A DNA stretch of 64,000 nt from Macrostomum hystrix (GCA_950097015.1 CATNEN010000010.1:2108001-2172000); one strand, 5' to 3'; shown: positions 9,298-57,600, counted from the stretch's first letter. Notes: generated from the letters alone by a model not told the origin. Made by a program: numbers and translations.

Positions 9298-9452
9298 TAA
9301 TTAGTTGAAAGCTGTCGAAGTTTCAAGACGCTGCTCCCGCGGTCCTCATAAAAGTGGGATATAATCCCATAAGCCAAGGACAGGTCTCATTCCTCGGTTA
9401 TCCGAGAACTCCCTAATTTGACAACCAAAGATCCCAAATCGCCGCCACAGGC

Positions 9453-18037: not shown

Positions 18038-19611
18038 CTCATTTGCCATTACCTCATCTCGCTAATCCACTTGTCTTGCGCTTTTTAGAATCTGCACTTT
18101 TCTCACTGCTGCTGAAATCACAGCAGTGGAATCTACTACTGCCAGAAAGGCACATCCATCACTTCTACGTCCGCTCGCTGTACTTTTGGTATCCAAAAAT
18201 ATTTATTTTCTATTATTTTATTTTTTTCCTATACACATTTCATTTGCATGTGTTAGCGCAACGGGCTGTGTCTAGGCTAGGACAAATTCAGAAATAATTT
18301 AGTTCATGAATGCACTTGCCTGTAACTTTCCACAGGGTCTGCGCCAGTGCACTTTTGTCTTTGGCAGATTTTTTCAGAAGAAGAAGTACACAAATGTTAA
18401 TAGTAATATTATTGTGTCCCCAGAGACAGGGCTTGGCTGGCACTGCCGGCCGCACCCCCGAGTACTCCACTAAAGCCCCAGCCCCCTATCTCTATTCGAC
18501 TTTCTGCTTGGGTCTTCCTCCAGCAGAGCGAACCGATACTGTCATTTTTCTGCAGTTCGAACACTCATTCTCACTGTGCTCTGTTATCTCCGGGGCCAAG
18601 TCCTCAGGTTGAGTAGAATAGCTAAACATTAGAATGAAGAATTTGGTTAAAAGTATTGCGAGCGTTGAGTAGCGTTAAAACTCTGAATTTTCTGCCCTTT
18701 TGCATAGTTATCAGACTCATAGATAGGATGAACCTGTTTAACCAGATGTACAGTCTGTCAGTCAGTGGCACAGCCCATTGCGTACAGGCTGCATGCAGTG
18801 CAGCTGCTCAGTCTAAGCAATGGGGTCAGCGGCACCCGCCAAGCGTGAAAGAAACTAATATTTCCTGATTACTGACACAGAAAGTTTTAAACACTTCATT
18901 CGAGCTAATGAAAGAATAAAGCGAACTTTTGAAACGGTTGAGTTGATTCTACGTGCCTGTTTACTCACATTGTGTGCGCACCTGTGACGGCAGCGAGGAG
19001 TATCAGCTGAATTTACTGCTTAAAAAATTATCTAGAAAGTTTTCTGGAAAATTATCGCAAACTTAAAAACTGGTTGGCACTTGAAAATTGTCTCAGACAA
19101 AGCTGAAAGTGTGAATAACAACTCGGAGGGTGTCCCTGTTTAGGTTCGTGAAGAGGTCAGCAAGCGAAGAGAAATTCACCTAATTGGTGCTGCTAATTTG
19201 TTGCCTCCGAGTTTCGGTACGAATAAGAAGCTAGAAATAAAAAATTCACAATTTCCTGAACTGTGTTAAAGTCTGGAAGCAGATTTCGGAAGACCTAAGA
19301 GTTAATTGCGATTTAGCGTCAAACTTTCTGCTTAGACAGACGAAACAATTTTCGGAAATTGCTCAGTCCAAGCTGGGGAAACTGGTACAGCTGACCTGAA
19401 ATTTGAGCGTCAGTAATTTTGCTGGTGGCTGCCAAACCTGACGATCTTTTCGAATCGGAGAAGACTCCACTAAGAGGTGCTTTATAACACGGTTTTAAGC
19501 TAATAAAGCGTGCTTAAATGCTTTTGGTAAATGAAAAATGGGGAGATTAGTTTTTAGTCTATGTACCAGACCATGCGGGAGTCACGAAAGCAATGGTGAT
19601 TACCATGGACG

Positions 19612-30600: not shown

Positions 30601-33600
30601 GGTAATATTTGTTGCTTGCCTGAATGGATTTTTTTTAAACGTGCCATTTTGCTCACTACAAACAAGACAAGTAAAAAACGCAGGGAAGGAACGCGAAGTC
30701 GATCGAGGTGATCACAAAGCGACTCAATTACCTCACCTGGGAGGAGGCCTTCATCTGTCTGACTGACGAGGAAATGCCGGACCAGCTGCGAGCCAAGTAC
30801 TGCGAGCTCATCACCACAATGTTTGTGGACGTTGACGACAACATCAGCGTGCTGGACAAGATCGACCTCACGTTTGTCTACGACGATATTTCCAAGGGCA
30901 ACAAGGAGCAACAGACAAAAGTAGTTGAGATGGTAAATCAGCCGAATTGTGCTTTTGACACTTCATGAGTGTTTAATTGAATGCAATTAAAGTTTTATTC
31001 TTACTGACTCTAGGGCATATTTACCCATTGAATCCCCGAAACCAACAGGAAACGGGCAGGAAGGCCTCAACTCAGAGGTACTTTCCGGCACTGCGAGACT
31101 GGTTGGAAGGCTTCCTGGACCAGAACCACGACATGACCGCCTCGGAGGTTGGGCACAATGTCCTCCTTGCCCACGTCATGCAGATGCTGCACTACTTGGT
31201 CAGGTTCGGTTACTACAACTCCAGCACCGACATCAAGAAGCTGCTGAAGCCGCTGCTGGAGCTAGCTTGACGGACGAAACGACAAGCCGCTGCCGAGAGG
31301 TGATTTTTGAACTGCTCAAGATCTCTCAGGCAGTGTACGCTGTGGGGCGGGGAATAGTAGCGACATAAAATAGAAAGCATTCAATTGCAGCGAATTCATG
31401 CCTGTATCTGCTCATTTCAGGCGTGTTGTCAAGCGAAATGGTGGCGAATGTTGCAGGATGTAATCAAAATCAATTTCTTGCGTCTCACATTATGCACTAT
31501 ACTGTTTGATCGAATACAGTTAGCACGCACTTTCCGCATAAAAACTATCCTCAATACTGACCTACGTTTGCGACTGTGGTAGACAATGTATTTTTTATTA
31601 TAATAATCTGAGTTGATTGTACGGAAAGTGATCCTAGGAGCAAAGGTAGGGTAAAGTTTAATTTAGCCCTAGTGGCTATTGCACTAAAGTGCAATCAGTG
31701 CAATGGTCGCTCACTTCTAAACTTCATCTGACTCTGGAATACAGGCCGCTCGTTCTGTGTGGCCTGGTCTTTACGAGTAGCAACTTAGTTTGTCCTGTGC
31801 TTTGGGCTTTCCAATTCCTAAATTTGAATAAAAATCGTCTGGTAGTTGTGTTTGTTGTTTGGTCAATCATTTTTTGTTGCAAGCGTATGTTAACACAGAA
31901 ACAATAACCGATCTTCTCTAATTTTAACCCTAACCAGCCGCATCATCGGACTATGAAAAGGTGCTGCAGCATTATCAAACCGTCGATCGATTCAAGCAGT
32001 CAAGAGAAACGAAGGCAGTTGTGGACGCTAAGTTTCAGTAAGGGATTCCTTACTGACTGGTACATGCTTGGTATACTTACTTGCTTTCAACTTACTTGGT
32101 ATATTGTCTAATAGCATTTCACTGCAATGTAATTTTCTGCAGAGCCATGCGCGTGCTGGACCTGTTCTTCAACTTCCGCTTCAATGTACGGCTGAAGCGA
32201 TTCGTGGCAGAGTTCAAGGATATTCACCGGGCGGCCCAGAGCACCAGCTCCACGAGCCAGGATGTACTGTCTGCGCTGCTCAGCGAGACTTATGAGCTCA
32301 ACGAGCAGTGAGTTCAAATATGGATTCCTGAATGACGGTTCTTGAGTATATGCCATTGTCTGATCCAACCTTAAGCATCACATCAATTACTATTTTATAT
32401 CCCAGTGTGGACTCCGTCGCTGGGCAACGCCTTTCGGACATGTTTGCTGAGTCCGCCTACTTCAGGAACTTCGACATTGTTGATGTCCTGCTGGTAAGAA
32501 GACTTTGAGTTGATTTGAGTAGTGTCCGTGCAAATTTAAACAGCCGGTATGTAACATGAGAACCAAAATCACGCGGACTTCAGGATCTGAGCCACTACGA
32601 GTACCCGAAGATGGTCCAGATGTCGATGTGGCTTCTGAACCGCTATTTCTCCGCATACAATTTGCTGTTCAAGCGAGCCGTGCTGGCCCAGGTGCTCATC
32701 ACTGATAGGTCCGTTGCAGTGCACAAGATGATCGAGGATGAGAGTCACGTGATGCACCGGATGATCGGCTCAAAGATGACCGACACGGACGTGGAGAAGA
32801 TGTGCTCAATTTTGTCTAAATTTTGCAAGTTAGTGAGAATCATCAGCATATGCAATTGATTAACATTATTTTCACCCTTCTTTTCATTTAATTTCAACTG
32901 AAATTCCGATTATAAACGGTTCAAAGAAATCCTCATGTCATACCTGCAGGGTCTGCCACCTGGACGACGAGCCTGAAGAGAGGCACCCAATGAACCAGGC
33001 CATTCTGTACAATAATGGAATATTAAACGATATTTTCGATTTGGTGTCTCAAGATGTGGATATTAACTTGCTGGTAAGATTCAAGTCCAGGTGGATACGG
33101 TCAGTCACGTGGCGTTTATAAAATTACTGGCGCCTCTAATAAAACAATTTTCAAGATGTTCCGTGAATCATCCAGGATGACAAAACGGGTACAAGCTCAT
33201 CACCGCATATCTGATTTGTTTATTCTGTTTCCTCCTTTTACAGTTGGCTAAAATTTAGTTAATAAACACAGTAGCCATTCATTCCTAAGAAAGCTTAAAG
33301 AAACTTAGACACCACTTTATATTTCATTTTCATTTCAAGTAGAGTACAGAAACGATGCACTGCAGAAAAAATAGAATAGTATTATTCGAGAAATTGTTTT
33401 ATTTGACTTATCAACTAAATAGCACGGTTTTCTCTAATAGATTACAATGGATTATCTCTACGCGCGAGTATATTCTAGCCACTGAACTGCAGGACGAGTA
33501 CAGCGGCCTCCGCCGAGTCTTTGCAAAGTGCTTCACCTTGTTGCGACTTATGGCTAGAGGCAACACCGTGGTGCAGAACCATTTGTTCGACCGGCTGGAT

Positions 33601-36600
33601 ACTCTGCTGAGCTGCGTTGGTGCCGAGTCCGAGCTGGCGTTGGCTCTAGCCGAGGTCTTCACTGGCAACAAGAACACCTGCATGAAGGTCCTGCCGCACC
33701 ACATAGCAAAGTCTATGTCTTTAATAGCGCAACACGGATCTAAAGCACCAGAATTTCTCGACATGCTAAACGCTCTGGTGAAGGTCGAGGAGCTGGATCT
33801 ACCACTGAAGCGCAACCAAGCCTACGTCATGAAGTACTTCATGCAGCAGAGAACCGAAGTGGCTCAGTGCCTCGACCAGAAGAAGGACGCCCAGCTGCGT
33901 TTGCTCAGGTCTGCCTCTCACTCGCCAGAGTCAGACTACATGATCGCTCTGGTCGACCTGCTGGCCACCTGCGCTGAGGGCGAGAACCGCTTCATCGAGT
34001 CTATCAACCAGACCATCTACCGAGTGAGCGACGTGCTGGTGATACTGACGGACCCCGCCATCCCGAACCACAACAAGCGGCCCTTCGCACGCTTCCTGCT
34101 GTGGGTCTACCTCAACACGGCCGGCGGCCTCATCGAGAGCGGCGCCGGCGACCTGCCGCACGATGGCAATATGTGGCAGCTGTTCGGCATGGTCAGGGAG
34201 GACCTGCGGCGCATGGCGGAGCTCGCGATGGAGAGCCCGCAGCTCGTCCGTCAGCTGATGAAAGTTCGAGTCTACAAGAAGTAAGTTGGCACACCTAAGT
34301 CGGCTTCCAAGTGTCAAACACAATGTCTAGTATGAAGTAGGAGCTTTTTGCAGGTTAATGGGGTTTGAGTTATTGTGCTGTGGTCGTCCTTTAGCAAATA
34401 CTTTGTGAATTGTTTTTAGATAAACCTTTAAATTTAAAACTGGGTGCTGGATCCATTAAAAGATAAACTAGATATAACATCACTGATTGCGTTGTCGTTA
34501 TGGACACAGAGTTATGGACACTAATCAATATTTTTAACAAACTCACTGATTGCGCCTTTTATATATACTCGTACTTTGCGGCGTATTTCATACTGTATTG
34601 CGCAGCACTCAACCAAATAATGATTTGTGCCACGATGCGTGAAATTTTCAGACCAAAGACTGCCTCTGCAAAGAGTGCAGATGAGCGAAGAAAAGTGGAA
34701 ACCCTGCCGCAAGTGTACGTTGACGATGAAGTGTAACTGCACATTTTTGACGCGCTAACATTTCATGAGGTTCATTGGTTTTGCATGAGTACGGCAAACT
34801 AATTTATTCGAGTTGGGGCTCACTCACTGCAGTGGTAAATGCTTAGTAACGGAAAAGATGCGAGTAGATTAGATAGACTAAGCGCCTAGCCCTTGTAAAC
34901 ATTTCAGAACCATTGAGGACTCTGGGAGTAGCCGAAAGCAGAATATTTCAGACGAGACCGTTCATGGCACGCTGAAGTTTCTGTTTGAAGGGGCTCTGCC
35001 AGTCATTAGTGTGAGTTTAACTTCATCGCTTTAAATTAGAATCTGTGCTAATGACTTGCAATGGAATCGGCTTAACTTCAGGTTTTCTTCAAGACTATTT
35101 TCCTGAAGGACTTGGAGGAACATCCCAAGGAAATTGACGAAATCAACAAGCTTGCACAAGCACTGATGGTGAGTGTTGCAGTTAAGTACTTTTTGTAGAA
35201 GCAATATTATGGAGACAAAAGTTATCACAGTTTCACCTTCTCAACTTGAAGACCTTCGTTGATGCCGTCATGCCTTTGGCATCTGATGAGAAGTACGTCA
35301 AGGCGCTCCTGGGCTGCACATCTTCCCTGCTAACTGTTAGCACCCTGCCTTCAAAGGTAAATGAGCTTGTATGTACGCTGACTGACAAGCATAAAAATGT
35401 ATTTTGCCCTATGCCCAATAAAAATAATTATAGACTATCGAAGATTTTCAAAGCAAGTACGGCTCAGGAATTCAGCTCAACTGGGATGCTCGAACTGAGG
35501 GCAGAAAGGTACGTCTATGGAATGAACAATGCACAAAGTTCGAGTTTTACATATCGGAAAGCAATTGTTTTCAGCGCTACGAGGAATACTACAACACGGA
35601 GGAAGAGCTGAACGTGCAGCTGAACGTGTTCGCCACCAACTTTAACATTTCCTACGGCGGCGAGAATACTCTCCGAGCCCAGATCGGCTTTCCAAGCGAC
35701 TTGGGTAAGCGCAGTAGGACTCTGGCACTACTGTACCAAAAGTACAAAATTAGCGAAAGTCCCAGTCGTTAGAGGCTCAGAGGCATGGTTTCGACTTTCA
35801 GCCAGGGAAGCAATTTGTGTCCTTCAGCAAGTTCTTCAGTTCCCTATTGCTTTCGTTCACCTAGCCGTAAAATGGTAACCAGCACCAGTTAGAAACGTCA
35901 GTGGGTGTGGCGGCCTCCGCAGACCACTGCACTGCACTATAGCTGCGGCTGTGGCACTGGTTGTACTGGGTAAGGTGTAAATTATGAATTCTTCAACTCG
36001 ACTAAAAATCTCCGCCATCAGACTACACTGTGATTGGCAGTGACGAAGAGCTGCCGCTGGGCAAGGAGTTTCAAAACCACATGGCCTGCTTCATCAACCC
36101 GGACCTGGGCGTATCGGATCCACTGAAGTTTAAATTGGCCGGCAAGCTGGTCGAGCAGCTGCAGTGAGTAGAAATGCCATTGCGGTAGAATAATAATAAT
36201 AATTGTAACACACTAAAAGTGGGGAACGAATCTCGCGCTGGCAGACCGAGACCGGTTTCTGGCTTGTTTGCCTTCGTCAGTCAGCCATAGCCACACGCAG
36301 TCCTCTCCCACCACTCTTAGTGTGCACAGAAGTCTCTTATAAGCTTGCCATTTTTATGGCGATACTTTTTTAAGTGTTATGTGAGAGTTTTGCAGCCAAG
36401 TCTTTGCTGTTCTACTGTTGTCAGTAGTCTTAATTTTATCTCTCACAATAATAATAATAATTGATTACACCTGGCCGAATTGGGTCAGATGTGCAGATGA
36501 TAGCACAGTCCATGGACTGGGGACGCCACACCCACCTTCAATTATCCCAGCAAATGCTGGTACCTAGCTGGGTGAACTAAAGCAATGCAGAGTTAAGTGT

Positions 36601-39600
36601 CTTGCTAAAGGACACAAATTTTTCCAGTGAAGTCAGGAATCGAATCCCCGACCCTTAAGTCGTGAGTCCGATGCCCTAACCACTAGGCTACCTCTTCTAC
36701 GGTAGAACTTAACCAATATCAGCCGAATCCTGCAGCTAGGGAAGATTATCAGTCCCGAGTTTGAGACAGCTGGTAGTCAATTCTGAGCTCACCTAAATCT
36801 TTGTTACACCTGCAGCATCTCGAACCAGATGGAGGTAACGAACGAAAAAGAGCGAATCGAACAGGAAATCCTGGATGTGAAGTGCCTGCAGCTCCTGCGA
36901 GCCATCATCCACAACGAGATCGTCAAGCTGCCTGACAACTTTGACAGCGCTGACACAAAAGAGTAAGCGTGTAGTGTCAATAACGCAATCGCATGCTCGA
37001 TATTTTTGCAGACTCATTGTAATTTGCTTAATATGGCAACCCTATGTCCATAACAATGCAACCTTATGAAAGTGGACAGCAGCATCAACTGCTTCGACGA
37101 TTAGTTTCCCTGTGATGATAGGTTAACCAAGGAAGAATATGAGAAGCAATGCGGGAAATTAATGAGGCATGCAAAAATATTTTAATCTAATTTTCTTCAG
37201 CATCATGGCCAAACTTACTGGTAAGTAGTGCAAGTTCCAGAAAGTTGGTTCTCTTGGGCTACATTGCGCACCATAGCGCTTCACTTGCTGCTCAGGAATA
37301 TTCGATTGACAAGCTGTAATACCAAGTGCTGAATTGCCTCGGTTTCAGGCTGACTCGAATGGGACAAAGTGATCTTGCCAGGTATTTACAAGATAATGTA
37401 CAGCTTCCGTTGCGAAAATGTTTCGTGCTTTTGCGTTAAACTACCCGCTTGAAGCATTTAATGCATGTGCTTAACGCGCTTTTTTCAGTTTAACATGAGT
37501 GCTTGATGTAGCTTGAAATTCATTTTTTATCAACGTTATGCATTTTGAGCATGGCTTGAGTCTCAAATTCAAATTTGAAGTGTTTTAGAGCGTCTACAGT
37601 CGTATACTCGTAAGTGTTACGAGTATTAGCTTGCTTTCCTCTGATTAATCTGGGCATTGCAGTTCCGTGTCAAAACACTAGCAGTTGTGTCACGGCCGTC
37701 TTCGGTCGTTAAAGGTTTTAATTTCTCGTAATTTCTATTTATTTCTAAAAATGACCTTTCATAACATAAAGGTTGTACTGGGTTACCCAGTTAAATACAT
37801 TTTATATTTATTAGTCAGTGGCTTGACAGCGTAACTTCTTACTTCTTTACAATCCAGACTCATTGAGGTGATCTCACAAGTCCAGAACTCGCTTAACAAG
37901 CACGACGCCATGCTAAAAGTGCTGCCACACCTGTCGAAACCGTCCGACGAGATCGTGCGAGAAGTACTGGGCTTCCTGGCCAACATGCTGTTCAACGGCA
38001 ACGAGGAGGTGCAGGGCAGCCTGATTGAGTATTTCTACGGCACGCGCGAGGAGAAGTTCTTCATGGCTGTTAAGAACCGCATCAGCTTATCGTCAATGGC
38101 CTGGAAGGAGAAGCAAGTACTACTCGACTGTTGGTTATAGGCTGGTGTAGCTATGAGAGTTGAAATTATTTTGGCACACAAATGATGGGGCTCAGTCTTT
38201 CTTGTGCCATTCTCAGCTACTGTCTTTTAATGCTGTTTAAATAAAAAATACAACTTCAATGATTGCCTTAGCAATAGGGTTATTCGATCCACTTTTACGT
38301 TTTCAGTCGAGCGCTAATAAGTCAGCATCAGGCAAAAATCGAGGAAGCCATCGCTGAAATGCGCGACCTCCAGCAGGCGATCAAGGAAGGCCGGGTCTCC
38401 GCAGAGGCGATGCAGGGCAGCAAGCTGGGCTCAATGTTGATGAGCATCCAGGCCAGCAGGACCAGCGTCGGTGGAAGCGCATCCAGAATGCGGGGCAGCA
38501 CTGCGGAATTGCGTCGGCGACTTCAACGAGCGGAGGGCTCCACGCCACAGATCCGCGGATCGCAGTCCAGCCTCCACGCAAATGGCGCTCAGACAAGCAC
38601 GGCAGCTGGCACAGGTGCCGGTGGATCGAAGGCCCTACTGGTCAAGGGTTCTCAGCCGCCCAACGGCCAGGCGGTCGGATTCCTGCCGGAAAATCGGGTC
38701 GCTCCCGTCCAGCAGAGCATTGTGGGAGCCGCATCAGCTATTGACGATGCTGAAATCGAGGAGTTGGCAATGAAGGTCGTGATGGAGAACGAGAATTTGC
38801 AGATGAAAGATGGTGGCTATATTGAGCTGGTGCTTCGAGTGCTTGCTTATATATGTGACGGACAGAACACTCAGCTGCAGGACTACCTTCGAGAGCAGCC
38901 CGACAACATTAAGTCAATCAATCTTGTGGCAGAAACAGCTCGCTTTCTAGGCCTAACCTACACGTCGATCAACAAAGCAAACATTTCACTGATCATCCAG
39001 ATTTTTGATACTTTGGTTGAATTCACGTCAGGCAACTTGAGCAATCAGGCGGTGTGCTTCGACAACAAAGTGTGCGACTATATGAACTATCTGTTGCGTT
39101 CCAAGCAGTCCTATGCAAAGTTCGGTCTTCAGGACGAAATGAGCATTAAAAGATCAATCGCCAATTTGATCATTGCGATGATTGAAGAAAATGTCAAGCG
39201 TGCAAAGGACCACGACCCGGCTGAGCTGCTGGGAAGCAACGGGCTGAGCGCCGCGCACATGGAGAATAAGCTGAAGGCAACTGCCGGAGTTGCCGACGAG
39301 GTGAAGGACACAATCGACGCGGAGAGCATTCGCAACGTGTTCTACGACTGCTACCGGCGCCACCTTGACGAAAGTCTGACGAAAGAGTCACGAGAGATGA
39401 TTATCACGGTGGGATTCAAATACTTTCTCATATTTCTGCGATTTCAGGACCTGGATAATCGAGAAACGATTAACTTCGAAAAGATGATAGAAAGAGATGT
39501 CGATGCAGAAGACCAGCAACTTGCGTGGGATTTCTATCAGTCCAACACCATGTCGATTGAGGTGCTAAAAGACGATAACCTGCAAAAGGTCTACTTCCGC

Positions 39601-42431
39601 GTCAAGGACAGAAAGGTTCTTCGAGAAGAAGTGAAGGAGCGCTTCAAATATGAAGTGGATCGGTAGGAAATTTATTTGTTTTTTCTTCATTTATTTAGCA
39701 TCTACAAAATACGAAGTGTAATCTGTAAGGGTGAAAATCAAACCTTAAAACGCACAACAGGACATCTCCGACGAACAAGCTGCGCGACTTCTCCGACTGG
39801 CTGCGAGAGATCATCAAGGACATCAAGTGGCAGAAGCGAGTGCTCAGCAATCCTCTGGGCTCATTCTTTGTGCACGGCTGGAAGGCCTTCAACATCCTGT
39901 GCATCATCCTGAGCCTGGCCATCAGCATCGTGGTGTTGGTCACTTGGACCAAGCCTGACGATAACAGCGATCCCGTGCCAGTTCGCACAGACGCGGCAAT
40001 CTATGCTACCTATGTGCTTGGCATTCTGCACAATATACTCAGCATGTTTGTACTAATTAGTTTCTTCCTGTGCAACAACCCATATGTGCCGAGTCCCCGT
40101 CAGATTCGCACTTTCTGGTCGTAAGTTAATCGTTTCATATTACGAGCTACTTGCTTATTAAAAATATAGCTCCCGCTTATGTTTTTGTTGTCTCTAATCC
40201 TTGCATAGGAAACTGATTGGGGTCACTCCAAAGGACGTCGAAGAGGACGTAGAAGAATCTGGTGGCAAGCTGCAGGTGTCCGTATTCAGCTTTAGCACAT
40301 TCTACTACCTGATCTTCTTGGGCTTCTCTATTCTGGGGACGGTCTTTTACGGCTACTTCTTCGCGTTTCACCTGCTGCACATTGCCAGGCACAACCAGCT
40401 GCTCACGCGAGTTATTCAGGCCGTTACAAAGAACGGTGAGTCAGTTCCGCTTTTATGTCATTTGATATTTAGTGCTAATATACTGTTTCGAAATATTTTG
40501 GTCTGAAATGTATTCCTACAAGAAACTGTTTTGTCAAACATTAGGCCTCTCGTTGCTGTGGGTTCTTATCTACTCCATGGCATTCTTCTTCATTTACGCA
40601 CTGCTGAGCTTTGCGTTTTATCGGAGCATATACGACAGCACGACAGGAAACTTCTGCGAGACCATGTACCAGTGCACGGTGACCGTCATTCACCGAGGCC
40701 TAATAGCTGGAATCTACGATGTGAGTCGCGCTTGTGAGAACTGGCGCTGCACTAAAGCCATTGTTTTTTTAATTAAGAATGGACTTCAAATCGTAACATC
40801 AACACGATCTCAGTAGAAGTACGAGCGTATCTTCGCCCTACGTTCTCAAGTATTTTAATGAACGGTTTAATGCCACACGCCTCATTTTAACCTTATGACA
40901 GGAAAATGTAAGTACCCCAAATGTTATAATGCATGCCACATATAAGCATGCACGGACGGTAATGTCAAAGTACCATAAAAATTACTCATTTCATTTCCTT
41001 GCTTTTCCACCTCGCAAGCAACACATCGCCTTTTGAAGAAATTACCACAGCACTCATTAGCCCGCTCCTTGCTCTTGCTCGAATTTTCTCAGTTTTTAGT
41101 CCTTTTTATAGCTGTTGTGGTGATTTTAGAGCCTTTCTGATGAACCTTTCTTCTGCATGAGTTTTTATCAGATGATTAATGTCCTCAAAGTGACATTTTT
41201 GTGAAAGAGCAAATTTAGCCCATGACAATTAGCTTGTCTTGCAAGTGATCGATTAAAGGATACTTTGATCTAATGTGAAATCATATTTATTGCAGTACCT
41301 TCCCGTGCCCAGCAATGAGTCGTTCACGTATCATGTTGTGAAAGGCATCTTCGACATTTCCTTCTTCATCATCATCACCACCATCGGCCTGAACATCATC
41401 TTCGGCATCATTGTCGACACATTCAGCGAGTTGAGGGACTCCAAATGGCAGATCGACCAGGACATGACCTCCGTGTGCTTCATCTGCTCCAGGAATGCCT
41501 ACGACTTTGAGCACCATGGAGAGGTAAGACACTCATTTGGATACTGCAAGCAGCGACCTGCCGTCTGCTCAATTCTGATGCCTCCAACCAAGAAGGTTCT
41601 ATCAGGCCAACATTGATCGTTCAACTTTATTTATTGCCAGGGATTCGAGAAGCATGTCAAGGAAGAGCACAACCAGTGGGCCTATCTGTTCTTCATTCTC
41701 TACCTGGACGAGACTCGATTCAATGACTACACAGCCATCGAACTGTTTGTCTGGCGACTGGTGAGCCGAACTCCCTCCCTAAATTTAGAGTTTGTGTTTG
41801 TGTTTGCTTGCCACGCAAAACTGCAGCAGCATGAGTTACATAAGAGCTTGACTCCAATAATAACAAAGGTGGCCTAACATGAGTTTCTCCAATCAACAAT
41901 CAGTTTTTTTGTTCATTCCTTCTCCAGTTTGAGAAGGAAAGACTGGACTACTTCCCGTTGAACAAGTCCATCACGCTGGAGGCGGCTGAGGACAACCGGG
42001 AGGAAGCCAAGCTCGAGACCCTTCTCAGCCAAGTGTCCTTCCTTGTTCGCAAGTGGAAAGAGGAGGTGAGTCACGTTTCAGTCTCAAAAAGCCAGGTGCT
42101 GTTAAGTTCCGGGCTTGCTGAATCGCTAATAAACCAGTTCAGTACTTTGGAAAGTGAGCAAGCGAATGCTAAATCGATCCCTTGTTTACAGGAGCTAGCC
42201 AAAGAGCGCGAGCGCGAGAAGCAGAGGCAGCAGAAGTGGGAGGAGCAGCACAAAAAGAGTGGCGACAAGGCCACTTTGGGCCGGCTGGTTCCGCCCCGGC
42301 CGATGACCGGCAAGCAGAAGACTGGACATGGCGAGTGCAGTGGTCGAGGCTGCCTTCAAATGACCCGCGAAGCCTCTGACTTAAAGTGGCTGCCTTTTGT
42401 GCCGACTGTTTTCATAATTGACGCCTCGTAA
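24683..42431 (+). CDS. ITPR: Inositol 1,4,5-trisphosphate receptor-like Ca2+ release channel, non-canonical lineage (copy A), about 2750 aa; one apparent +1 frameshift at 31264-31265
   Basis: Exons: 24683-24771, 24955-25025, 25103-25227, 25400-26182, 26649-26727, 26822-26910, 27069-27194, 27964-28107, 28343-28528, 28764-28778, 29341-29463, 29553-29777, 30126-30236, 30530-30601, 30684-30932, 31049-31299, 31421-31459, 31938-32037, 32143-32307, 32406-32493, 32584-32828, 32950-33073, 33493-34280, 34652-34714, 34908-35010, 35082-35168, 35252-35356, 35434-35508, 35575-35704, 36022-36163, 36816-36962, 37349-37381, 37858-38112, 38307-39662, 39761-40120, 40209-40435, 40545-40720, 40902-40907, 41296-41523, 41641-41760, 41928-42065, 42192-42431. 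Phases are continuous once the single extra base is removed. Motifs: [37 protein letters not shown]-associated LQDYLREQ, six TM segments, [18 protein letters not shown]2H2 CFIC...H...EH. The length of the C-terminal tail is less certain. Confidence 0.92.
28764..28778 (+). CDS. 15-nt in-frame microexon of ITPR-A (TSAEC)
   Basis: ttttatctttacag|ACGTCAGCGGAATGC|gtaagtagact; counterpart in copy B at 63720-63706 (KSADY) with the same gtaagtagact donor. Confidence 0.7.
35751..35990 (+). mobile_element. tRNA-derived SINE with a Meta/CORE-like central domain (degenerate copy) in an ITPR-A intron
   Basis: Degenerate B box (GTTTCGACT), core TTTGTGTCCTTCAGCAAG...ATTGCTTTCGTTCACCTAGC...GTGGGTGTGGCG, and AGGTGTAA before the tail, all shared with the copy at 36447-36698. 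Confidence 0.55.
36447..36698 (-). mobile_element. tRNA-derived SINE with a Meta/CORE-like central domain and (ATT)n tail in an ITPR-A intron
   Basis: Minus strand: A box GGTAGCCTAGTGGTTAGG, B box GGATTCGATTCC, core TTTGTGTCCTTTAGCAAGACACTTAACTC...GTTCACCCAGCT, 3' ATTATTATTATT. Confidence 0.7.
40902..40907 (+). CDS. 6-nt in-frame microexon of ITPR-A (EN), directly after the pore filter
   Basis: cattttaaccttatgacag|GAAAAT|gtaagt; 9-nt counterpart in copy B. Confidence 0.6.
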
Positions 42432-43904
42432 CTTTCTGTCCAACTGTCTTCCGATTGGCTGGGAGGAGATGGTTTCGTCGAATGTATTTTAGCCACAAGT
42501 TGGCTATCTTATTTAGGCAGAATACCTTTTCTAAGGCCTGTAAATGTGACTAACGCGTTCCTCCTCGCTTTTATATGTATAAGCTCTGAACTCTTTACAG
42601 ATATTTTACTCCCTTTATTGATATTGTTATCTGCCTGTCGCTTTCAAGTCTTGTATTTTGCCTTGGCGTTGCTGGAAGCTGCCTCCGACATGAGTTTTGA
42701 CTCGAGCTCTTACGGTGCCAAATCTTAAACAGTTGTACGAAGTCCTCATGTTAATGCGTGACTGACATAATGCCCTTGTGCAGGGAAGCTTCCAGCAACG
42801 GTCTGACACTCCTGACACTTACTAACTGTTGATGAGTACTAGAACTCGATGAAAGTTGGTGGCAAGTGAAAAAATAGTCAGTAAGATGGAACCGTTGAAG
42901 AACCAATGAATAGAAAAATAGGGATGGGAAGCTTTTAGGTGGTGCTACTGCGCTCGTTTTCCAATTCAGTCGCCACACACTTTCATCGGTGCAAACTCTA
43001 AATTAAGCTAACAGTTTTACCTAGAGTAATCAATTATAATGCTGGTATGTCGCATATTGCCAGACACAGCACTAACTCCTACTTCCATGCCGATGTATGT
43101 GTGATGTATTCGGCTGCCGACCTCCGCTATACTGGCTGTGCGTATCGCAGCTTTTGTGTGCGAGAGTCTTTCCTGTTAAATCAGATGTACTTGTGGATTA
43201 TCTCTTTGATTTAGCCAACTTCTTCCTTGCTCACTGTTATTGCCGGCGCTTTGTCTGAGATTTTTCCAGTTTGAGTTTATAGTTGAGATCTTATGATTAT
43301 TTTGATAAACCAGTCTACTTCGTATTTATTACGAGCTACTATAAACGTTAAACGTTAAATAAACGTTAACGACATATTTTATCTGAAAAATACAGCATAA
43401 AAGTACATTCATGCCTCACCCCTTATATTTTTCTGTTGTGAGAGCCCTTCGATACTATATCAAGTATACGATATCAAAGATTTCTAGATAGTAGTTGTAA
43501 CTACTACTCGTACAATCTGGCTGACGTCAGAGAGCTTGGACGGTAGGGCTTGTGATTCAGTATTGAAGAAACTGAGGTCACCGGCCAAACCTGAGTCTAA
43601 CTGACCGATTTCGCAGCCAAGAGGATGCAAGGTTAATACCGACGCGGCAGTCCTAAAGAAACGGAGGATACTTTAGAGAGCGCTCTTACTCTGCAGCAGC
43701 GACAAGGGCAATCGAATTCAGTGCTCGGTCTACTCCTGGTGATAATGCAAACAAGCACAAATGGGCGTCCCAAGCTTACAGGTAAAATCCGGTGAGCGTC
43801 TGCCACGTCAGTCAAGCTTACTATGAGAATTGGAATCGGGAGACGAGACACGCATAAGGTGGACTTAGGCGAGACTATCGTAAAAAGCAACCAATGATAT
43901 AGTA

Positions 43905-44142
43905 ATAAACGGCTATGAGTGCTGCAATGTTTTTAACCGAGGGCGCGTAGCGCCCGAGGTTTAAAACTTTGCAGTACGAATAGCCGTTTATCACTGGCAT
44001 TGTATACTTTTGGACCACAGACAGTTGGGGCGTGCAACAATCAGTCTCACGGAGCGGATATAGCCAGCGGTCTCGCGGGGCGTGCAGCAATCGATTATTT
44101 TGTCGATTGGTGCACGCCCGAAATGTCTATGGTCCAAAAGTA
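43905..44142. repeat. Two adjacent imperfect palindromes (fold-back or MITE-like element)
   Basis: ATAAACGGCTAT...GGGCGC GTA GCGCCC...ATAGCCGTTTAT (43905-43991) and TACTTTTGGACCA...TGGTCCAAAAGTA with about 38-bp arms (44005-44142). Confidence 0.75.
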
Positions 44143-45626
44143 GACCGCCTGACTTAGGGCAGCAAGAGAACTCAGTTTGGGGAAGGCTGTAAGACAGCGA
44201 GACGAGCCGTGGCATTACCGGGCTGCCTAGAACCATATGTCCAAGAACGGCACCGTCAGTCTACGCGTCTAACTGTGCGAAGTAACTATACCCCGAAGTA
44301 ACTATACCTGTGAGAGTATCGTGTATCTAAAGCGTTGCTGTTTAAATGTTTTCCAGTTCGTGTTACAATTGGTGGTGAAATATAACTGTGGCTTCAGACC
44401 CCGCATAGTGTGGGCGAAATAATCCGAGCTGGCGGGGTTCGGGACATAGACAGTAAAGGCGTGCAACAATCAGGCTTCATTGGTGGCTGGGAAAAAACCC
44501 CTCCAAAAGTGTACAATACGGCAAAGACGAAAGGCTTCGTGCTTTATCTACATTTATTTTACAGAGTTTGTTTGCTTCCTCACAAAAGCGCTGGTCGAAG
44601 TGTAAACGCAGCCCAAGCGTCGAATGCGTCTCCAACAATCGTTATCGTACGGCCAATGACTATCATTCGGTGACTTGCCTATCGGCGGCTCAAGCTAGCC
44701 TGTGTCTTCCGCGTCGTTGAAATTAACTCTAAATTCAAATTTGTTTTGCAAAAAATTACTAAACTTGAGTCTGAAAAACTTAAGACCTGTAGGACTGCAG
44801 TTAGAACAACACAGACAGTTCTAATAGTTTCCGTTGTATTGTAGAACTCCAACAGAACCTTCGGAAACACGGCCCATGCGCAATGAATTTTCGCCTGCTC
44901 ATCATGGAAATATTTCCTAGGAAAGTAACAAAAATAAAGAATTCTAGAACCAAAGCTTAACTCATCGATAAAGCTAGCTAATCTCGTGGCATTAACTATC
45001 TTAAAGACTTAATTGGGGTCTTAATGGGGCCTGTGAAAAACAGAAAATTGCGCAGAAAGTTAGCAAATCTAACAGCATAAGGTGCGCAAAATGAAAGAAA
45101 TTTTGTTTTATTAGCAAGAAGCAGCTTGACATGCACAGGACTGTCGGGGCCACAGGTTCACAGCATTTTCCACCGGGTTGCCCCCAAAACCATGTCTACT
45201 AGGCAGGGCCTCTGTTACGACACAGGCGGTACTAATCCATAGTGTCCGTGTTTTAAGTGAATTGACTAAGCGAAAGCTCGATGTCCAATATTGGCACTGT
45301 CTAACTATGACAATGTGATAGTTAGTCAATTTTTAATCATTTTCAAGTCAATACCTAAGAACCAAGTATTTTTATAGCTTCTAATAGTTCATACAATTTT
45401 TATAGCAGGAAATAAGGACACAACCCGGTAAAAATAAAAAAGAGCAAATGTTCCTTGGTCTAAGGCATCGGTTGAGTAGACTTAATTAAGAAGTGTGCAA
45501 AACCAAGCACGCCAAAATTCTAAAAAACGAACACATTCGACAGACGCAGCTTTCGTCAACCCAATAGGCGCCAGCGATAAAAAACTGTGAATCCTTGAGT
45601 TATGATTTGAACACACGCTAGAACGG

Positions 45627-48600
45627 TCAATCGAATGGAACTTCCAGCTGCTGACTTTCTTCAGTGGGACGTGGCCGGACGACGATGCCGCTGCTGCCGC
45701 CAGCGCCAGCGCTACCACTGTCTCCGCTGCCGCTGCCACCGCCGTTACCGCCGTTACCGCCGCCGCCGTTCTTCTTGTGCTGCTCCTCCCACTGCTGCTG
45801 CCTCCTTTTCTCGCGCTCGCGTTCCTTAGCCAAGTCCTGAGTGAATGTCGTTGCGATTGAGGATGAAAGATAGGAATCTGCAGCTTAATTAGACTTGGTT
45901 TGCAACTAGTCGCACCTCTCTAAATCAAACCGAGTTCCTTAAATACACTTTAAAGACAAACTAGGAACACAGACGCTACGGGTTCTTGACAAACTCTGTT
46001 AGATATATCAGATTTATTTTAAATACACGCCTAAACGTTCAAAAGTTTTTTAAAGCATGCCTCGTTTAGAAACAAAAAAACTGATTCGATCAATAGAAAG
46101 AAAGTTTCACCCACCTCTTCTTTCCACTTGTGCACAAGAAACGAGACCTGCGTCATTAGCGTTTCCAGCTTCAGTTCCTCGTGGCTGTCCTCGGCTGCCT
46201 CCAGCGTGATGGACTTGTTCAGCGGGAAGAAGTCTAGCTTTTCCTTTTCGTACTGAATTAGGATTGGTCACGGTCGGTATGCGAATTGTAATGAAAAACG
46301 TTTGTCCTATCACTTCGCGATTTGATTCAGATTTGTATTTGCTGACAAGTTAGTGCGACCTACCAATCGAGACACATAGAGCTCAATTGCAGTGTAGTCA
46401 TTCTGTCCTAGTCTCGTCCAAGTACAGAATGAAAAACAGATAGGCCCACTGGTTATGTTCTTCCTTCACATGCTTCTCGAATCCCTGAAATTTATTATCT
46501 TGCTATAAAGTATCCTAACAGCATGTAGCCTAAATGTCGACCAAACCAAACTACATGAAATTTCCGTACCTCTCCATGGTGCTCAAAGTCGTAGGCATTC
46601 CTAGAGCAGATGAAGCACACGGAGGTCATGTCCTGGTCGATCTGCCATTTGGAGTCCCTCAACTCGCTGAATGTGTCGACAATGATGCCGAAGATGATGT
46701 TCAGGCCGATGGTGGTGATGATGATGAAGAAGGAGATGTCAAACACCGATTTGGCCAGGTGATAGTCGAATGTTTTATTAGCTGGCACAGGTAGGTACTG
46801 GAATGAGAGTTGTTATGAATCATGAATGACATGTCACATGCAACCACTTTGCACTTTTTTACCGTGTTGTGCAGAAACAAAGGAGAAGCGCACGACAACA
46901 GAAACAAGTAAAAAATATATTGAAGTGCCGAAGAACATAACAGGGGGATTGTGAACCAGTTAAGGCAAACACCACAGAGGAAATAAAATACAAATCTGAA
47001 GATAAAATACAACAGTAAAGCTCTGGTGGATGCCTTTTTAATCCTTTCCAATACTTACATCTGCCTCCTGCGATTAAAAATAAAATTAGAGAATTATTTA
47101 TTTAAAACGTAATCTCACTGATAAATATGAAAATATGCTTTTCTCGCAGAGCATCACAAAGATCAAGTCTTACATCATAGATTCCTGCAATGAGGCCTCG
47201 ATGAATGACCGTGACGGTGCACTGGTACATTGTCTCGCAGAAGTTTCCAGTAGAAGAATCGTAGATTTCTCGGTAGAATGCGAAACTGAGCAGCGCATAG
47301 ATGTAGAAGAAGGCCAGCGAGTAGATGAGGACCCACAGCAGCGACAGACCTGAATGTAGCGACACATATTCAGTAGCAGCTCAGCAAGTACTGTATGAAG
47401 CAGCATAATATACGAGGCTATGAAACTGCCAGCCTATCGGGAGGAGCTAGTTTTCAGCGCAATTGTCTGTCAAAGTCTCACCATTCTTAGTGACAGCTTG
47501 AATGACCCTAGCCAACAACTGGTTGTGATTGGCGATGTGCAGCAGGTGGAATGCGAAGAAGTAGCCGTAGAACACGGTGCCCAGCACTGACAGCAGCAGG
47601 AAGGAGATGTAGTAAAACGTGCTGAAACTGAACACGGACGCTTGCAGCTTTCCTTCAGCGTTGTCTTCATCATCCGTGGATGTTTTGGCACCGACTCCTA
47701 TCAACTTTCTGCAAGCATGGAAGGAAGAAAGCGGAAAGGGATAAAAAATTGAGAAAGCTCGATGAAAGCATACAATGCAAAATGGGATCAAGTTGGTGTG
47801 GTCACTTACGCCCAGAACGTGCGAATCTGCTGCATACTTGGAAAATACGGATGATTGCAGAGAAAGAAGCTGATCAGTATGAAGAGGCTGAGTATGTTGT
47901 GCAGAATTCCCAGCACATAGGTGGCATAGACGGCGCCATCGGCTCGAACTGGCACAGGATCGCTGACTGTTTCTGGGATGTTCCAACTACTCAGCACGAC
48001 GATGCTGATGGCCAGGCTCAGGATGATGCACAGGATGTTGAAGGCCTTCCAGCCGTGAACAAAGAATGAGCCCAGAGGATTGCTGAGCACTCGCTTCTGC
48101 CACTTAATGTCCTTGATGATTTCGCGCAGCCAATCAGTGAAGTCACGCAGCTTGTTCGTAGGAGACGTCCTGTTAAAGTACATGTCTTATGCTCTAATTC
48201 GATTGTTTTTAAAGGACATCTAAACACGAAAGTCCTGAAACAATTTAATCATCAATTTATGAATAAATATTCTATTGCGAGAAAGGATCGTTCTCTTACC
48301 TGTCAACTTCGTATTTAAACCTATCCTTGACTTCTTCTCGAAGCACCTTCTTGTCCTTAACTCGAAAGTACACTTTCTGCAGATTGTTGTCCTTCAGGAT
48401 TTCAATGGACATTGTGTTAAACAGGTAGAAGTCAAAAATAAGGCGCTGCTCGTCAGCGTCAGCGTCCTTCTCAATCATCATCTCAAAATTGATGTTCTTT
48501 TTGTGATCGAGGTCTTGAAAGCGCAGGAAGATGTGAAAGTACTTGAACCCGACAGTTATAATAGTCTCTCTCATGTCCTTGTCGAGATCTGTATCCAAAT

Positions 48601-51600: not shown

Positions 51601-54600
51601 TGGCGCGCAGCAGCTGCAGGCACTTGACGTCGAGGATTTCCTGTTCGATTCGCTCCTTCTCGTTGCTCAGCTCCATCTGGTTGGAGATGCTGCCAGACGG
51701 GGGAAAAATTGTTGAGAGCTTAATCTTCCATTGCACAAAAGACACGAAAGCTCACGACAGCAGCGGTTTGCAGAGAAAATGAGTCTAAACTGGGTTCGAA
51801 AGCTAATTAAAACTGATTTATTTATTTAGAAAATATTATTTCTAACCCTGAGCACTCACAACAGCTGCTCCACCAGTTTGCCAGCCAGTCTGTACTTCAG
51901 CGGATCCGTGATGGGTCGGCTCGGGTCGATGAAGCAAGCCATGTGGTCCTGGAACTCCTTGCCTAGGGGCAGCTCCTCGTCGCTTCCTATTGACGTGTAC
52001 TCTGAACATGGCAGAGGGATACTCGTAATTAAATTTGAGGCAATGAGTTCTCAGCATGCTTTAAGACTGCACAATGCATGGGGCTCCCCTGCTTGGGCTT
52101 GCTTGGAGCGGTGAGTCGGTACACATCATTTGTGTGTTAGTCAGACTGCCACTTTGTGATATTTGGTATTTGATTTGTGATGTTAATCTGAACAGGGATT
52201 TTTAATCAGATTAGTGGGAATTTGTTTCGGAAATATGTGGTTCGAGTTTTGAGTGCGATACCCATACGATTATTGTACTGGCCCATTGTACTCATGTTTG
52301 CCTCCGCTGCTTCCTTTACAGAATGCTTTTCAAACCTTGATCGCTGTCAAAGCCGATTTGATCCCTGACAGTGTTTTCTCCTCCATAGGAGATGCTGTAG
52401 TTGGTGGCGAACACGTTCAGCTGCACATTGAGTTCCTCCTCGGCTGAGTAGTACTCCTCGTATCGCTAAAACAGTTTTACGATGCGCTTAAACTTCCAGA
52501 TTCTTCTGCATCCAGTAAGTGGGATCCAGTCACTCCGGGATCCAGTCACTCTGGGATCCAGTCACTCTGGGATCCAGTCACTCTGGGATCCAGTCACTCT
52601 GGGATCCAGTCACTCTGGGATCCAGTCACTCTGGGATCCAGTCACTCTGGGATCCAGTCACTCTGGGATCCAGTCACTCTGGGATCCAGTCACTCTGGGA
52701 TCCAGTCACTCTGGGATCCAGTCACTCTGGGATCCAGTCACTCTGGGATCCAGTCACTCTGGGATTTCGCCATAATGCAATTCGCAGGCTTACCTTCCGA
52801 GCTTCGCTCCTGACATCCCAGCTTATCTGAACTCCGCCTCCATATTTTCCTCGAAATTCTTCGATTGCCTGAAGTAATTCAGTGAATAAATTAATCAGTC
52901 CACTTTCAGCCTTTGTCATTTTGGCGATCGTAAATAATTTATAGTAAAAAATATTTAGGCATAAAATCTGAGCTGATTACTGATTATTGAATTTGTAATT
53001 AGAAATCGATTACTAATCATTGCAAGTCGATTTCATTGGCCTCATTATCATCTCGAAAATCTGCTGTCAAGAAAAAAATCAGATTAGTTTCTTCGATTGA
53101 TTAAAAGGCCTGGACCCATTCAAAGCTTTTCTTTCACCTTAATACCGCTAATCTGCCTGTCCTGCAAAGTTAATCGCGAATGTCACTCGTATGGTATCTG
53201 CTACTTGAAGTAGAATATGAGAGGCTTTGGCACAATAGATTGGTCTCGAAGTGTTGGAGAGAGTTCAAGTTCTGCTCCTTTGACTCACCTTGGCTGGCAG
53301 GGTGCATACGGTGAGCACGCTGGTGGCACAGCTCAGCAGGTACTTCACGTACTTCTCCTCGGAGATTAGGGGCATGGCGGCCTCGATGAAGTTCTGCCAA
53401 AAAAGGCGATGGTACATTGTCACGGCTCAAGAATTATGAGTAACTATGAAGACGAACTGATTCTTGCAGTTCTGACAGCTTACAATGAGAATCTTGGCCA
53501 GTTTGTTAATCTCATCGATTTCTTCCGGGTGATCTTCCAAGTCCTTGATGTAGATGCTCTTGAAGAAGGTCTGGAAAATTTATAGGCTCGTCGTGGCAAC
53601 TGATTGCCATATAAATGTGGATAGAAAATACCGGTCAAAAGAATAACTTCCAGCTCACATTGATGACAGGTAAGGCGCCTTCAAACAGATACTTTAGCGT
53701 CCCGTGAGCCGCTTCATCAGTTTTCTCCTGCCTCTCCTTGCCAGCCGGGTCCTCCATCTCGCTGAAAGTTTAATCAACGAAAAGCGAATTTGCGAATCAC
53801 TTTTTGGGAACCGCTGATGGATGCTTTCAATGTCACTGTCAATGTCACGAAGTCAATAAGATCACAGATCATTGTGCTGAAGTCAGACTCAGTTGTGTAA
53901 TTCTAATTTAAAAAAATTCTGAATGAAAACGAAGCTAAGATTTTGAAGCTATGAGACACTCTTAAACTATGAACCAGAAAATCTTGCAGTCTATTTAGTC
54001 TACGCAGGTAAAGTTCGAGTAAGAGCTAAAATTTCGGCATATCCATTTTGAGCAGATTGCATTAAATGGAGGCACTCACTCTCTTAATAAAACTTGAGAT
54101 CAGAAGTGCTCACATCTAGGGTGTGGGACGTTGGATTGAAACTGGTGAATCTCATGTGGGTTTCCGACATAGAAGATAGCTATGAACTCGGTGTTCTCAG
54201 TCTAGACTACCTTGGTACGTGTATAAACATCTCACTGCTCTACATCTTCCAGTCATTTTCCTTTGCACTCATTCCCTGCACAAGTCCTCAGGTCCTGATC
54301 CATCTCCCTTTGCACTCATTCCCTGCACAAGTCCTCAGGTCCTGGTCCATCTCCCTTTGCACTCATTCCCTGCACAAGTCCTCAGGTCCTGATCCATCTC
54401 CCTTTGCACTCATTCCCTGCACAAGTCCTCAGGTCCTGATCCATCTCCCTTTGCACTCATTCCCTGCACAAGTCCTCAGGTCCTGATCCATCTCCCTTTG
54501 CACTCATTCCCTGCACAAGTCCTCAGGTCCTGATCCATCTCCCTTTGCACTCATTCCCTGCACAAGTCCTCAGGTCCTGGTCCATCTCCCTTTGCACTCA

Positions 54601-57600
54601 TTCCCTGCACAAGTCCTCAGGTCCTGATCCATCTCCCTTTGCACTTCATTCCCTGCACAAGTCCTCAGGTCCTGGTCCATCTCCCTTTGCACTCATTCCC
54701 TGCACAAGTCCTCAGGTCCTGGTCCATCTCCCTTTGCACTCATTCCCTGCACAAGTCCTCAGGTCCTGGTCCATTTCCCTTTGCACTCATTCCCTGCACA
54801 AGTCCTCAGGTCCTGGTCCATTTCCCTTTGCACTCATTCCCTGCACAAGTCCTCAGGTCCTGGTCTAGTTTACCGACAAGAAATCGGAAACCAGCCATAA
54901 ATTAGAATAAGAGTAAAACTCAACCGATAACAGAAAGTTTTGAAATCTACTGTTCTAAAACGGTTAACAGTAAACGGCAATTCAACCAGAAATCGGCGAT
55001 CTAAAAAATAAACAGCAGCAAAACACAAGAACAAAGGAAATACAGAAGACACGGGCAGCTCAGGCGCAAATGTAATGCAATGCGCAGTGAAATTTTTACA
55101 CTTGAGGCAGCGTCTCCAGCTTGTGCTTGTGCGATCGCCTCCTTTTGGAGGAGTGTCTCTTAGTTCTGAAAGCGGACGTTGCAACTGATGGTTGTGAAAG
55201 CTCAGCGAGAACTGATGCCAAAGTTGGTGACCCCAAGATTAAACAATGCTGAACAGTAATAGTGACAAATGTGAGCGAAAACTACAGCTTCTGCCCAAAC
55301 TGCATGCGAGGTGGCCCAGAATATCTGCCGCTATCATTCTGCATTTTACTCGTACATTTTAGCCATGGCTAGTGAAGGGCTCTGCGACTCGCAGTCGATC
55401 ACCAGCAAGTGCGATTGAAGTGCACCAAGCTTTTTCCTGCAACGTGCCGCAAAATTATCAGCTGACGAAACTAAAAATGGACTGTAGTAGCACTACACTA
55501 GCACACTTAATAAACACCTCGTAAAATGCGCATCAACATGATTTATTAAGACTAACTGAAGTCATTAATTCATTCGCAGCCAGTTTGAGTGTTGTCATCT
55601 TTCCAAGAATTGCACAGTTGCGAAATTATTTGCGAAAAGGCTCTAACAATCACCTAGAATCAAAATAATTTCTTTTGACGAGGCTCTGAAATGTGACTCA
55701 CTTTTTCAATACTCGAATCTTCAGCAGCTGACGGACAAGCTGCGGGCTCTCCATCGCGAGCTCCGCCATGCGCCGCAGGTCCTCCCTGACCATGCCGAAC
55801 AGCTGCCACATATTGCCATCGTGCGGCAGGTCGCCGGCGCCGCTCTCGATGAGGCCGCCGGCCGTGTTGAGGTAGACCCACAGCAGGAAGCGTGCGAAGG
55901 GCCGCTTGTTGTGGTTCGGGATGGCGGGGTCCGTCAGTATCACCAGCACGTCGCTCACTCGGTAGATGGTCTGGTTGATAGACTCGATGAAGCGGTTCTC
56001 GCCCTCAGCGCAGGTGGCCAGCAGGTCGACCAGAGCGATCATGTAGTCTGACTCTGGCGTGCGAGTTGGCGATCGCAGCATGTTCAGCTGGGCTGCTTTG
56101 TCCTGGTCGAGGCACTGAGCCACTTCGGTTCTCTGCTGCATGAAGTACTTCATGACGTAGGCTTGGTTGCGCTTCAGTGGTAGATCCAGCTCCTCGACCT
56201 TTACCAGAGCGTTTAACATGTCCAGGAATTCAGGCGCTCTGGAGCCGTGCTGTGCAATCAGGGACATTGTTCTGGCGATGTGGTGCGGCAGGACCTTCAT
56301 GCAGGTGTTCTTGTTACCAGTGAAGACCTCGGCTAGAGCCAACGCCAGCTCGGACTCCGCGCCGACGCAGCTCAGCAGGGCATCCAGCCGGTCGAACAAA
56401 TGGTTCTGCACCACCGTGTTGCCCCTGGCCAACAGACGCAGCAGGTTGAAGCACTTCGCGAACACGCGGCGAAGACCGCTGTACTCGTCCTGAAGACAGG
56501 CGCACACTGAAGGCAGTTACGAGGTAGCAAGTGCTCGACATTAACTGAATCCTTTCGGTTAAAAAGTTTTTTATTAAGAGGTGTGAAGTTTTACAGCTAA
56601 GACTATTGGCAATAGAGTCGTAGGCATGTGAAAGGAATAAAAAGCACGACATACAAACGCATTAGAAAGAAGCTTTTCAGTGAAAAAAATGCGTGGAATA
56701 CATTCTCCACCACGAAGAGGTATTAAATTTGGTATTAAATTAAACACGTATTTTCGTGTGAAAACGTATATCAAGCGCTCGAAGAAAAGCTTTCACCAAG
56801 ACAGAAAGACAACTATTGTGTGAAGGAAAACAAAACGAAAGTTATTTTTACTCTTAAGGAAGGCTCAATCGATAAAATTAAAGCGGAGTACCTTTTTCTT
56901 CTTTTGCTTTTTCGATGCTCGAGCAGTCTTGAAAGAATGGAATTAGTGGAGAGCATCAATTAACAAGTACAGAAAACCGTCTCCTTCTTGTATTTCAGCA
57001 AGGATTCGGAGCGTTGCGCTTAAACTGTTCAGCAAATATCAAAGCAAAATGTTTTTTTCTGTACGCAAAGCGAAACAAGCCAGCCAAGTCGGCAATGACT
57101 TAGCGATGTTTTTCGACTGTTTATGATTCGGAATGTCTAGGAAAGCTCAGGTACTGACCCCTGACGAAAGACAAGCATCAGTCCATCGCGAATTTCGGCG
57201 GGTATATAGAAATCGAAGCGATGGAAGAAAGTACACTAGGACTGTCAGAATGTGCAGTGGGCTGTAAGCGTTGGTGCACGGGGATAGAGAAAACAATTCG
57301 CCTATTTTACTTCTCCGCTTCGCTTGGCTGTTCTCACCATAGGATCTCACCATACTTTCAATGATCAGTTCAATTTCATTGTTCACTATAGATTCAAGGT
57401 TCGAATCCAGCCAAGCGGGTGACGTGCCAGATGATAAAATATGCCCGACACTCCAGTGCCGTCTGTGCTCATGCGATGAAAGGTGCGCATTCTTGCTCAC
57501 CTGGACATTCAATCTCGTCTCGTTGTCCACCACTACGTTCTTGAGTAATGAGAAATTTAAGCATGGGAAAGTGCACAGGGGATTAATCCTTGAGCAGGCA

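Follow-up and report, generated by a model that had tools for sequence, protein, structure and literature searches.

Can a splice choice of two or three codons change the charge at the luminal mouth of an intracellular Ca2+-release channel? The question is raised by a stretch of 64,000 nucleotides (nt) from the Macrostomum hystrix genome (GCA_950097015.1, CATNEN010000010.1:2108001-2172000; hereafter the window), which holds two convergent paralogous channel genes of the IP3R/RyR superfamily, copy A on the plus strand and copy B on the minus strand. A prediction made earlier from this DNA proposed that the intron following the selectivity filter codons contains an acidic microexon in each gene, 6 nt long in A and 9 nt long in B. 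Both elements, cag/GAAAAT/gtaagt and cag/GAGGCAGAT/gtaagt, are confirmed in the sequence and are in frame. We give a probability of about one half to the reading that they are real, selected alternative microexons with low-level or cell-type-restricted inclusion; that splicing thereby switches acidic residues at the pore mouth is a hypothesis built on this reading.

Both post-filter introns contain an in-frame candidate microexon

The coding sequence of copy A is interrupted after ...GGA ATC TAC GAT at 40720 and continues at 41296 with TAC CTT (Tyr-Leu), while in copy B the exon ends with ...GAT at 47174 and the next one starts from 46797 (Table 1). Since both introns are phase 0, both candidates preserve the reading frame and inclusion would yield the predicted proteins GIYD-EN-YLPVP for A and GIYD-EAD-YLPVP for B. 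The acceptor of B is a tandem, cAG/GAG/, so that a 6-nt form, GCAGAT (Ala-Asp), would also be possible.

Both elements show the structural hallmarks of a microexon, namely an AG acceptor, a pyrimidine tract, a branch point, a GT donor, a length that is a multiple of three and no stop codon. The AG-free zone upstream of the acceptor extends over 53 nt in A and 48 nt in B, branch-point-like motifs are found at -15 (UUAAC, A) and -22 (CUAAU, B) and the donor reads GTAAGTA in both. Rbfox-type motifs lie downstream of the A donor (UGCAUG at +23 and GCAUG at +39, positions 40931-40951) and none is present near B; the window average is 0.9 GCATG per kilobase (kb) per strand. Neither host intron consists of repeats or transposon pieces.

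Conservation between the paralogs may reflect selection

The two elements could be chance pseudo-exons, that is, two unrelated AG...GTAAGT pairs in homologous introns that are never used by the spliceosome, an explanation that we consider possible but doubtful. Across the entire window (128 kb of strand), a strict motif made up of CAG, 3, 6 or 9 in-frame bases free of stop codons and GTAAGT has four occurrences, and the candidates account for two of them. Dinucleotide shuffles of both introns gave joint probabilities per intron pair of 1.2e-5 for the strict motif, 7.6e-4 for YAG, up to 27 nt and GTRAGT, and 0.022 for NAG, up to 27 nt and GTRAG. As these values have to be multiplied by the ~35-40 paralogous intron pairs in the window, significance ranges from clear to none depending on the motif definition: the loosest value approaches 1, as expected under chance, whereas under the strictest definition, which both candidates satisfy (CAG, no more than 9 nt, and GTAAGT followed by A), the corrected value is ~5e-4. 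Two further observations speak against chance. Both candidates begin with G.A and finish with AT, and the strict motif is absent from 38 distinct homologous post-filter introns (31 kb) of metagenome-derived relatives, where looser matches mostly represent the true start of the next exon. These introns come from a second metagenome scan that gave 80 loci; a first scan with the filter exon had returned no match.

As originally stated, the surrounding introns cannot be aligned with each other, the best local score of 20 being close to the shuffle mean of 21. A global MAFFT alignment of the two introns is meaningless and local alignment against shuffles was used instead. The top-scoring local match coincides with the candidate (AGGAAAATGTAAGTA versus AGGCAGATGTAAGTA, 13/15 bases), with the acceptor AG and the donor GTAAGTA intact in both copies and a length difference of 3 nt. 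As a score, 13/15 is no better than that of shuffled introns, in line with a chance origin. Over 2.2 kb of exon alignment, synonymous divergence (dS) between A and B is 0.93, and it reaches saturation in the exon that immediately precedes the intron; by this measure the A/B duplication is old. At dS ~0.9, the ten signal bases would not be expected to persist in A and B alike if they were neutral, and an independent chance origin is improbable; these two considerations together form the main argument for selection.

Gene conversion does not explain the similarity of the candidates. A tract of 168 nt has a single difference (41359-41526 on the plus strand versus 46734-46567 on the minus strand) in genes that elsewhere show dS ~0.9, which points to recent gene conversion, confined to the S6-coding part and ending 3 nt into the next intron. 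As the tract starts 63 nt downstream of the acceptor, the post-filter intron lies outside it.

The assembled transcript of copy A skips the candidate

Several observations weigh against the elements being functional microexons. The motif definition was picked after the data had been seen, and the A and B candidates differ in length and at two of six aligned exon bases. A UGC close to the acceptor is typical of eMIC-dependent exons, and the only one near the acceptor lies at -31 in A, with none in B. The other points come from transcripts and from relatives.

RNA contigs of four runs from one study were examined on 40300-46299, a segment covering A's intron and B's 3' exons; the contigs are spliced and hence RNA-derived. 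A contig of 715 letters is present in all four runs and lies on 40300-40434, on 40544-40720 and then from 41296 onward, so that 40720 is joined directly to 41296 with no extra letters. Its letters are fully accounted for (310 + 135 + 177 + 93), the last 93 ending at 41388 because a k=31 unitig must stop once identity with copy B has started at 41359. This sum leaves no room for six additional letters and the assembled, dominant isoform of A consequently skips the candidate. No second contig carrying letters between the joined positions 40720 and 41296 was reported in the four runs, and the +6 nt product that had been anticipated across this junction was not found among their spliced contigs. 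What holds of the microexon claim is that the elements have competent splice signals, preserve the frame and have been retained by both paralogs of an old pair; inclusion does not hold for the mature mRNA assembled for A and we consequently report both elements as candidates. Contigs drop rare variants and the tissue of the runs is unspecified, so a minor or neuron-restricted isoform of A may exist as well. Word searches of the organism's own transcript-derived proteins across the junction gave no 100% match.

A low-depth contig of run X1 lies within A's intron (41150-41268) and differs from the genome at 41203 (G>A) and 41215 (T>G). Pre-mRNA of a second allele that had not been spliced is the likely source.

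Relatives share the intron and one carries two extra residues at the junction

A phase-0 intron after the acidic filter residue is found at the same place in many metagenome-derived relatives (L019, L023, L033, L034, L020 and L050), and judged by this shared position the post-filter intron is ancient. Also to be counted against microexon use, annelid, orthonectid and mollusc proteins and the Macrostomum lignano paralog P0151 have no insert at the junction, which makes the skipped form the ancestral protein. The original prediction had expected the element in orthologous introns. In the one homologous M. lignano intron examined, that of P0151 (L001 15832-16164, 333 nt), there is neither a candidate nor a GTRAG donor; this intron is filled by a short tandem repeat. 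P0151 is the more distant M. lignano paralog, and the sister of A, taken as its M. lignano ortholog, is P0187 (small tree, support 83/95). In P0187 (UniRef A0A1I8JAV8) 27 Leu/Phe/Ile-rich residues stand exactly between GIYD and YLPVP. They probably represent a mis-modelled intron, and not a simple read-through since the first codon is not GTN.

Protein P0209, encoded on a Tara Oceans scaffold (L002, 1374-1850) and 75-79% identical to A and B, reads GLFD-QD-YVPLP in one uninterrupted exon. It has two extra residues exactly at this junction, and QD is chemically like EN. In Macrostomum the filter exon has an intron on either side; this gene has lost the two and has an intron of its own after ...RDSK that is absent in Macrostomum. 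With the intron gone, the six bases could be a microexon that was fixed when the intron was lost via an mRNA copy; a lineage-specific indel is equally possible. The length of the post-filter loop varies among homologs, so an insert of two or three residues should be tolerated. Isoforms from Patella show no difference in the pore.

For a chance origin of the two elements, transcripts and relatives cut both ways: the lack of any junction but the skipped one for A and of a candidate in the M. lignano paralog speaks for it, and the relative with a two-residue insert at the same site speaks against it. The splice signals could also be conserved as a pair that has no role in the protein, either as a relic of an ancestral A/B microexon or as a decoy within the intron or a site for two-step splicing, inclusion then being noise. 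This would fit the better conservation of splice signals than of exon bases between A and B, the skipping of the element in the assembled mRNA and the ancestral protein without an insert, but we regard it as improbable: introns of 575 and 376 nt are too short to require removal in steps, a disused relic at dS ~0.9 should lose the ten signal bases (~0.45^10), and the frame is kept without stops in both copies with a length difference of 3 nt.

Two classes of element in the relatives were set aside. A recurrent apparent microexon in oligochaete-type loci, cag/AGTCTG/gtgagtca, proved to be where the following exon begins (..SLVSH..). In two related oligochaete-type loci of the LIGD-type subfamily (L062, ~480-500, and L064, ~770-790), cag/6 nt/gtgagtc is found in the same post-filter intron, ~90 nt from its start; since these two loci have the entire beginning of the intron in common, the shared element is uninformative.

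Inclusion is predicted to add carboxylates next to the filter aspartate

The filter region lies at 40691-40720 in A and 47203-47174 in B, and both copies read GLIAGIYD. This is not the canonical GGG[VI]GD filter, and GLIAGIYD was placed against GLRNGGGVGD by profile alignment with a 2-residue gap (...hrGliegly--e for the family profile versus ...NQGLRNGGGVGD). In this alignment the final Asp of GIYD corresponds to the filter Asp of GGGVGD and is the sole residue retained, in agreement with the predicted placement of the candidates right after the filter. Filters of relatives end in ...GLFD, ...GIYS, ...SLFE and ...GILE, only a terminal polar or acidic residue being kept.

Our favored reading, selected alternative microexons, would work as follows. 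The ancient phase-0 intron after GIYD would hold a homologous tiny exon, AG/G.A.AT/GTAAGTA, in both copies. The default mRNA skips it, as seen for A, and a minor or cell-type-restricted mRNA would include it, so that all four subunits would carry Glu-Asn (A) or Glu-Ala-Asp (B) immediately behind the filter Asp. The luminal mouth would gain four (A) or eight (B) carboxylates, which, judging from the RyR mutagenesis literature, would be expected to strengthen cation binding and increase conductance, or to alter the selectivity for Ca2+. Given the alignment of the GIYD Asp with the IP3R filter Asp, the insert would take the position of RyR1 E4900. RyR1 has been reported to require D4899 and E4900 for its conductance and selectivity (PMC2668181). 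Forms of A and B with the microexon (GIYD-E...) would mimic the D-E of the RyR1 filter GGGIGDE, in which an acid directly follows the filter Asp at the luminal mouth (PMC2668181); in contrast, the RyR Glu is constitutive and its filter glycine-rich, while the GIYD filter of A and B is two residues shorter and its Glu would be optional. We only tentatively propose the full scenario, in which cell-type-specific inclusion of 6-9 nt tunes permeation through an optional RyR-like D-E luminal charge ring and the element predates the A/B duplication and may be fixed as QD in the relative that lost the post-filter intron.

The site would be unusual for this family of channels. Splice sites S1-S3 of vertebrate IP3R1 are cytosolic and, to our knowledge, known IP3R and RyR splice variation lies in cytosolic regulatory regions; for IP3R/RyR of flies or vertebrates we know of no report of splicing at a site that adjoins the filter Asp. 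In another channel family, splicing in the TRPM3 pore loop constitutes a divalent-selectivity switch. The TRPM3 variants resemble our candidates in that splicing alters the pore-loop length of a tetrameric cation channel and hence permeation or pharmacology, but they involve a longer insert and alternative splice-site use and are experimentally proven (PMC9290681). Short neuronal exons that depend on eMIC (Srrm) in Drosophila ion channels have Itpr and RyR among their targets (PMC8797185). Like the A and B elements, these exons are very short, keep the frame and occur in intracellular Ca2+-release channels of a bilaterian outside the vertebrates. The fly exons are left out of the mRNA in cells other than neurons and are preceded by extended AG-free zones and strong branch points, a code which the AG-free zones and branch-point-like motifs of A and B resemble; the difference is that the elements of A and B are only candidates and that UGC near the acceptor is weak (A) or absent (B).

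With short neuronal Itpr/RyR exons (PMC8797185) and TRPM3 pore-loop variants (PMC9290681) already known, what would be new is the placement of a microexon at the exit from the filter in a member of the IP3R family. If real, splice-controlled charge at the luminal mouth would give cells a direct way to set the unitary Ca2+ flux or the selectivity of a store channel, and would provide a natural isoform pair for probing ion conduction through the unstudied glycine-poor GIYD filter. Should the elements never be spliced, they would calibrate how convincing a paralog-conserved pseudo-microexon can look.

Copies A and B have the architecture of IP3R-type channels

Translated self-comparison of the window delineates the two convergent paralogs, with A spanning at least 25.2-43.4 kb on the plus strand and B running from 63.0 to 45.8 kb on the minus strand and beyond the window edge. 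Exons were searched one by one. With Pfam, copy A displays the full IP3R domain order of Ins145_P3_rec and MIR, two RIH, RIH_assoc and an Ion_trans-type pore, and no SPRY domain was detected among the exons scanned. The C-terminal pore with six transmembrane segments, including S6 and the following Cys-rich region, is homologous to solved IP3R and RyR structures. Against the PDB, the S6 exon matches RyR (1e-10) and IP3R (3e-10) about equally, the family profile has its best match in ITPR2 (3.6e-59; RyR1 1e-49) and the filter exon alone found no match. Domain order and pore matches support the assignment of A and B to the IP3R/RyR superfamily with an IP3R-type architecture, and their description as ITPR paralogs stands.

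The nearest proteins are P0187 (92%) and P0151 (74%) of M. lignano, followed by those of annelids, an orthonectid and molluscs; identities and tree are based on a column-wise merge of two exon alignment rows. A and B are putative members of a glycine-poor-filter invertebrate branch of IP3R-like channels, for which the name IP3R-B goes back to Alzayady et al. 2015. Similar to this branch, A and B have IP3R-type domain order and a filter that is non-canonical but has an acidic residue at its end, and annelids, molluscs and hemichordates possess relatives. They differ in their GIYD filter, other genes of the genome having the LIGD type. Copy B is transcribed, as evidenced by a spliced joint from 45835 to 46114 in the RNA contigs.

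Table 1. Positions of exons, introns, candidate microexons and domains of copies A and B in the window, with the evidence for each.
Feature	Position	Strand	Evidence
Copy A, exon with S5-proximal segment, pore helix and non-canonical filter	40544..40720	+	RNA joints 40434 to 40544 and 40720 to 41296; translation; paralog match; profile alignment to ITPR2 pore
Copy A, phase-0 intron after filter Asp codon, 575 nt, gtgagt...ttgcag	40721..41295	+	GT..AG joint in contigs of 4 runs
Copy A, candidate 6-nt microexon, acag/GAAAAT/gtaagta, Glu-Asn	40902..40907	+	Sequence; not in assembled isoform
Copy A, exon with luminal loop, S6 and start of Zn-finger region	41296..41523	+	RNA contigs; RyR/IP3R S6 match, E 1e-10
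Copy B, exon homologous to 40544-40720	47174..47350	-	93% amino acid identity, synonymous sites saturated
Copy B, phase-0 intron after filter Asp codon, 376 nt, gtaaga...ttccag	46798..47173	-	Sequence and homology of flanking exons
Copy B, candidate 9-nt microexon, cgcag/GAGGCAGAT/gtaagta, Glu-Ala-Asp	47059..47067	-	Sequence
Copy B, exon homologous to 41296-41523 (loop and S6)	46570..46797	-	Homology
Copy A, Ins145_P3_rec (1.5e-17) and MIR (7e-10)	25217-26206	+	Pfam
Copy A, RIH	28238-28573; 33343-34281; 29553-29780	+	Pfam
Copy A, RIH_assoc (7e-22)	38278-39663	+	Pfam
Copy B, RIH	55701-56516	-	Pfam

Other features of the window

The 3' ends of the convergent genes A and B are ~1.4 kb apart (43400-44770), and in this interval some runs contain extra spliced or odd joints (44195 to 44429 and 44281 to 44565). 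Long minisatellite arrays that are open in several frames sit between and inside genes, including the introns of copy B (885-1715, 3437-4769, 5112-5745, 6184-8748, 15387-18294, 54091-54902 and 60561-61319). The window opens with an exon from a transporter of the Cation_efflux (ZnT) type (1-231, minus strand), and a DEG/ENaC (ASC family) channel gene with two long exons occupies 9417-11511 on the plus strand.

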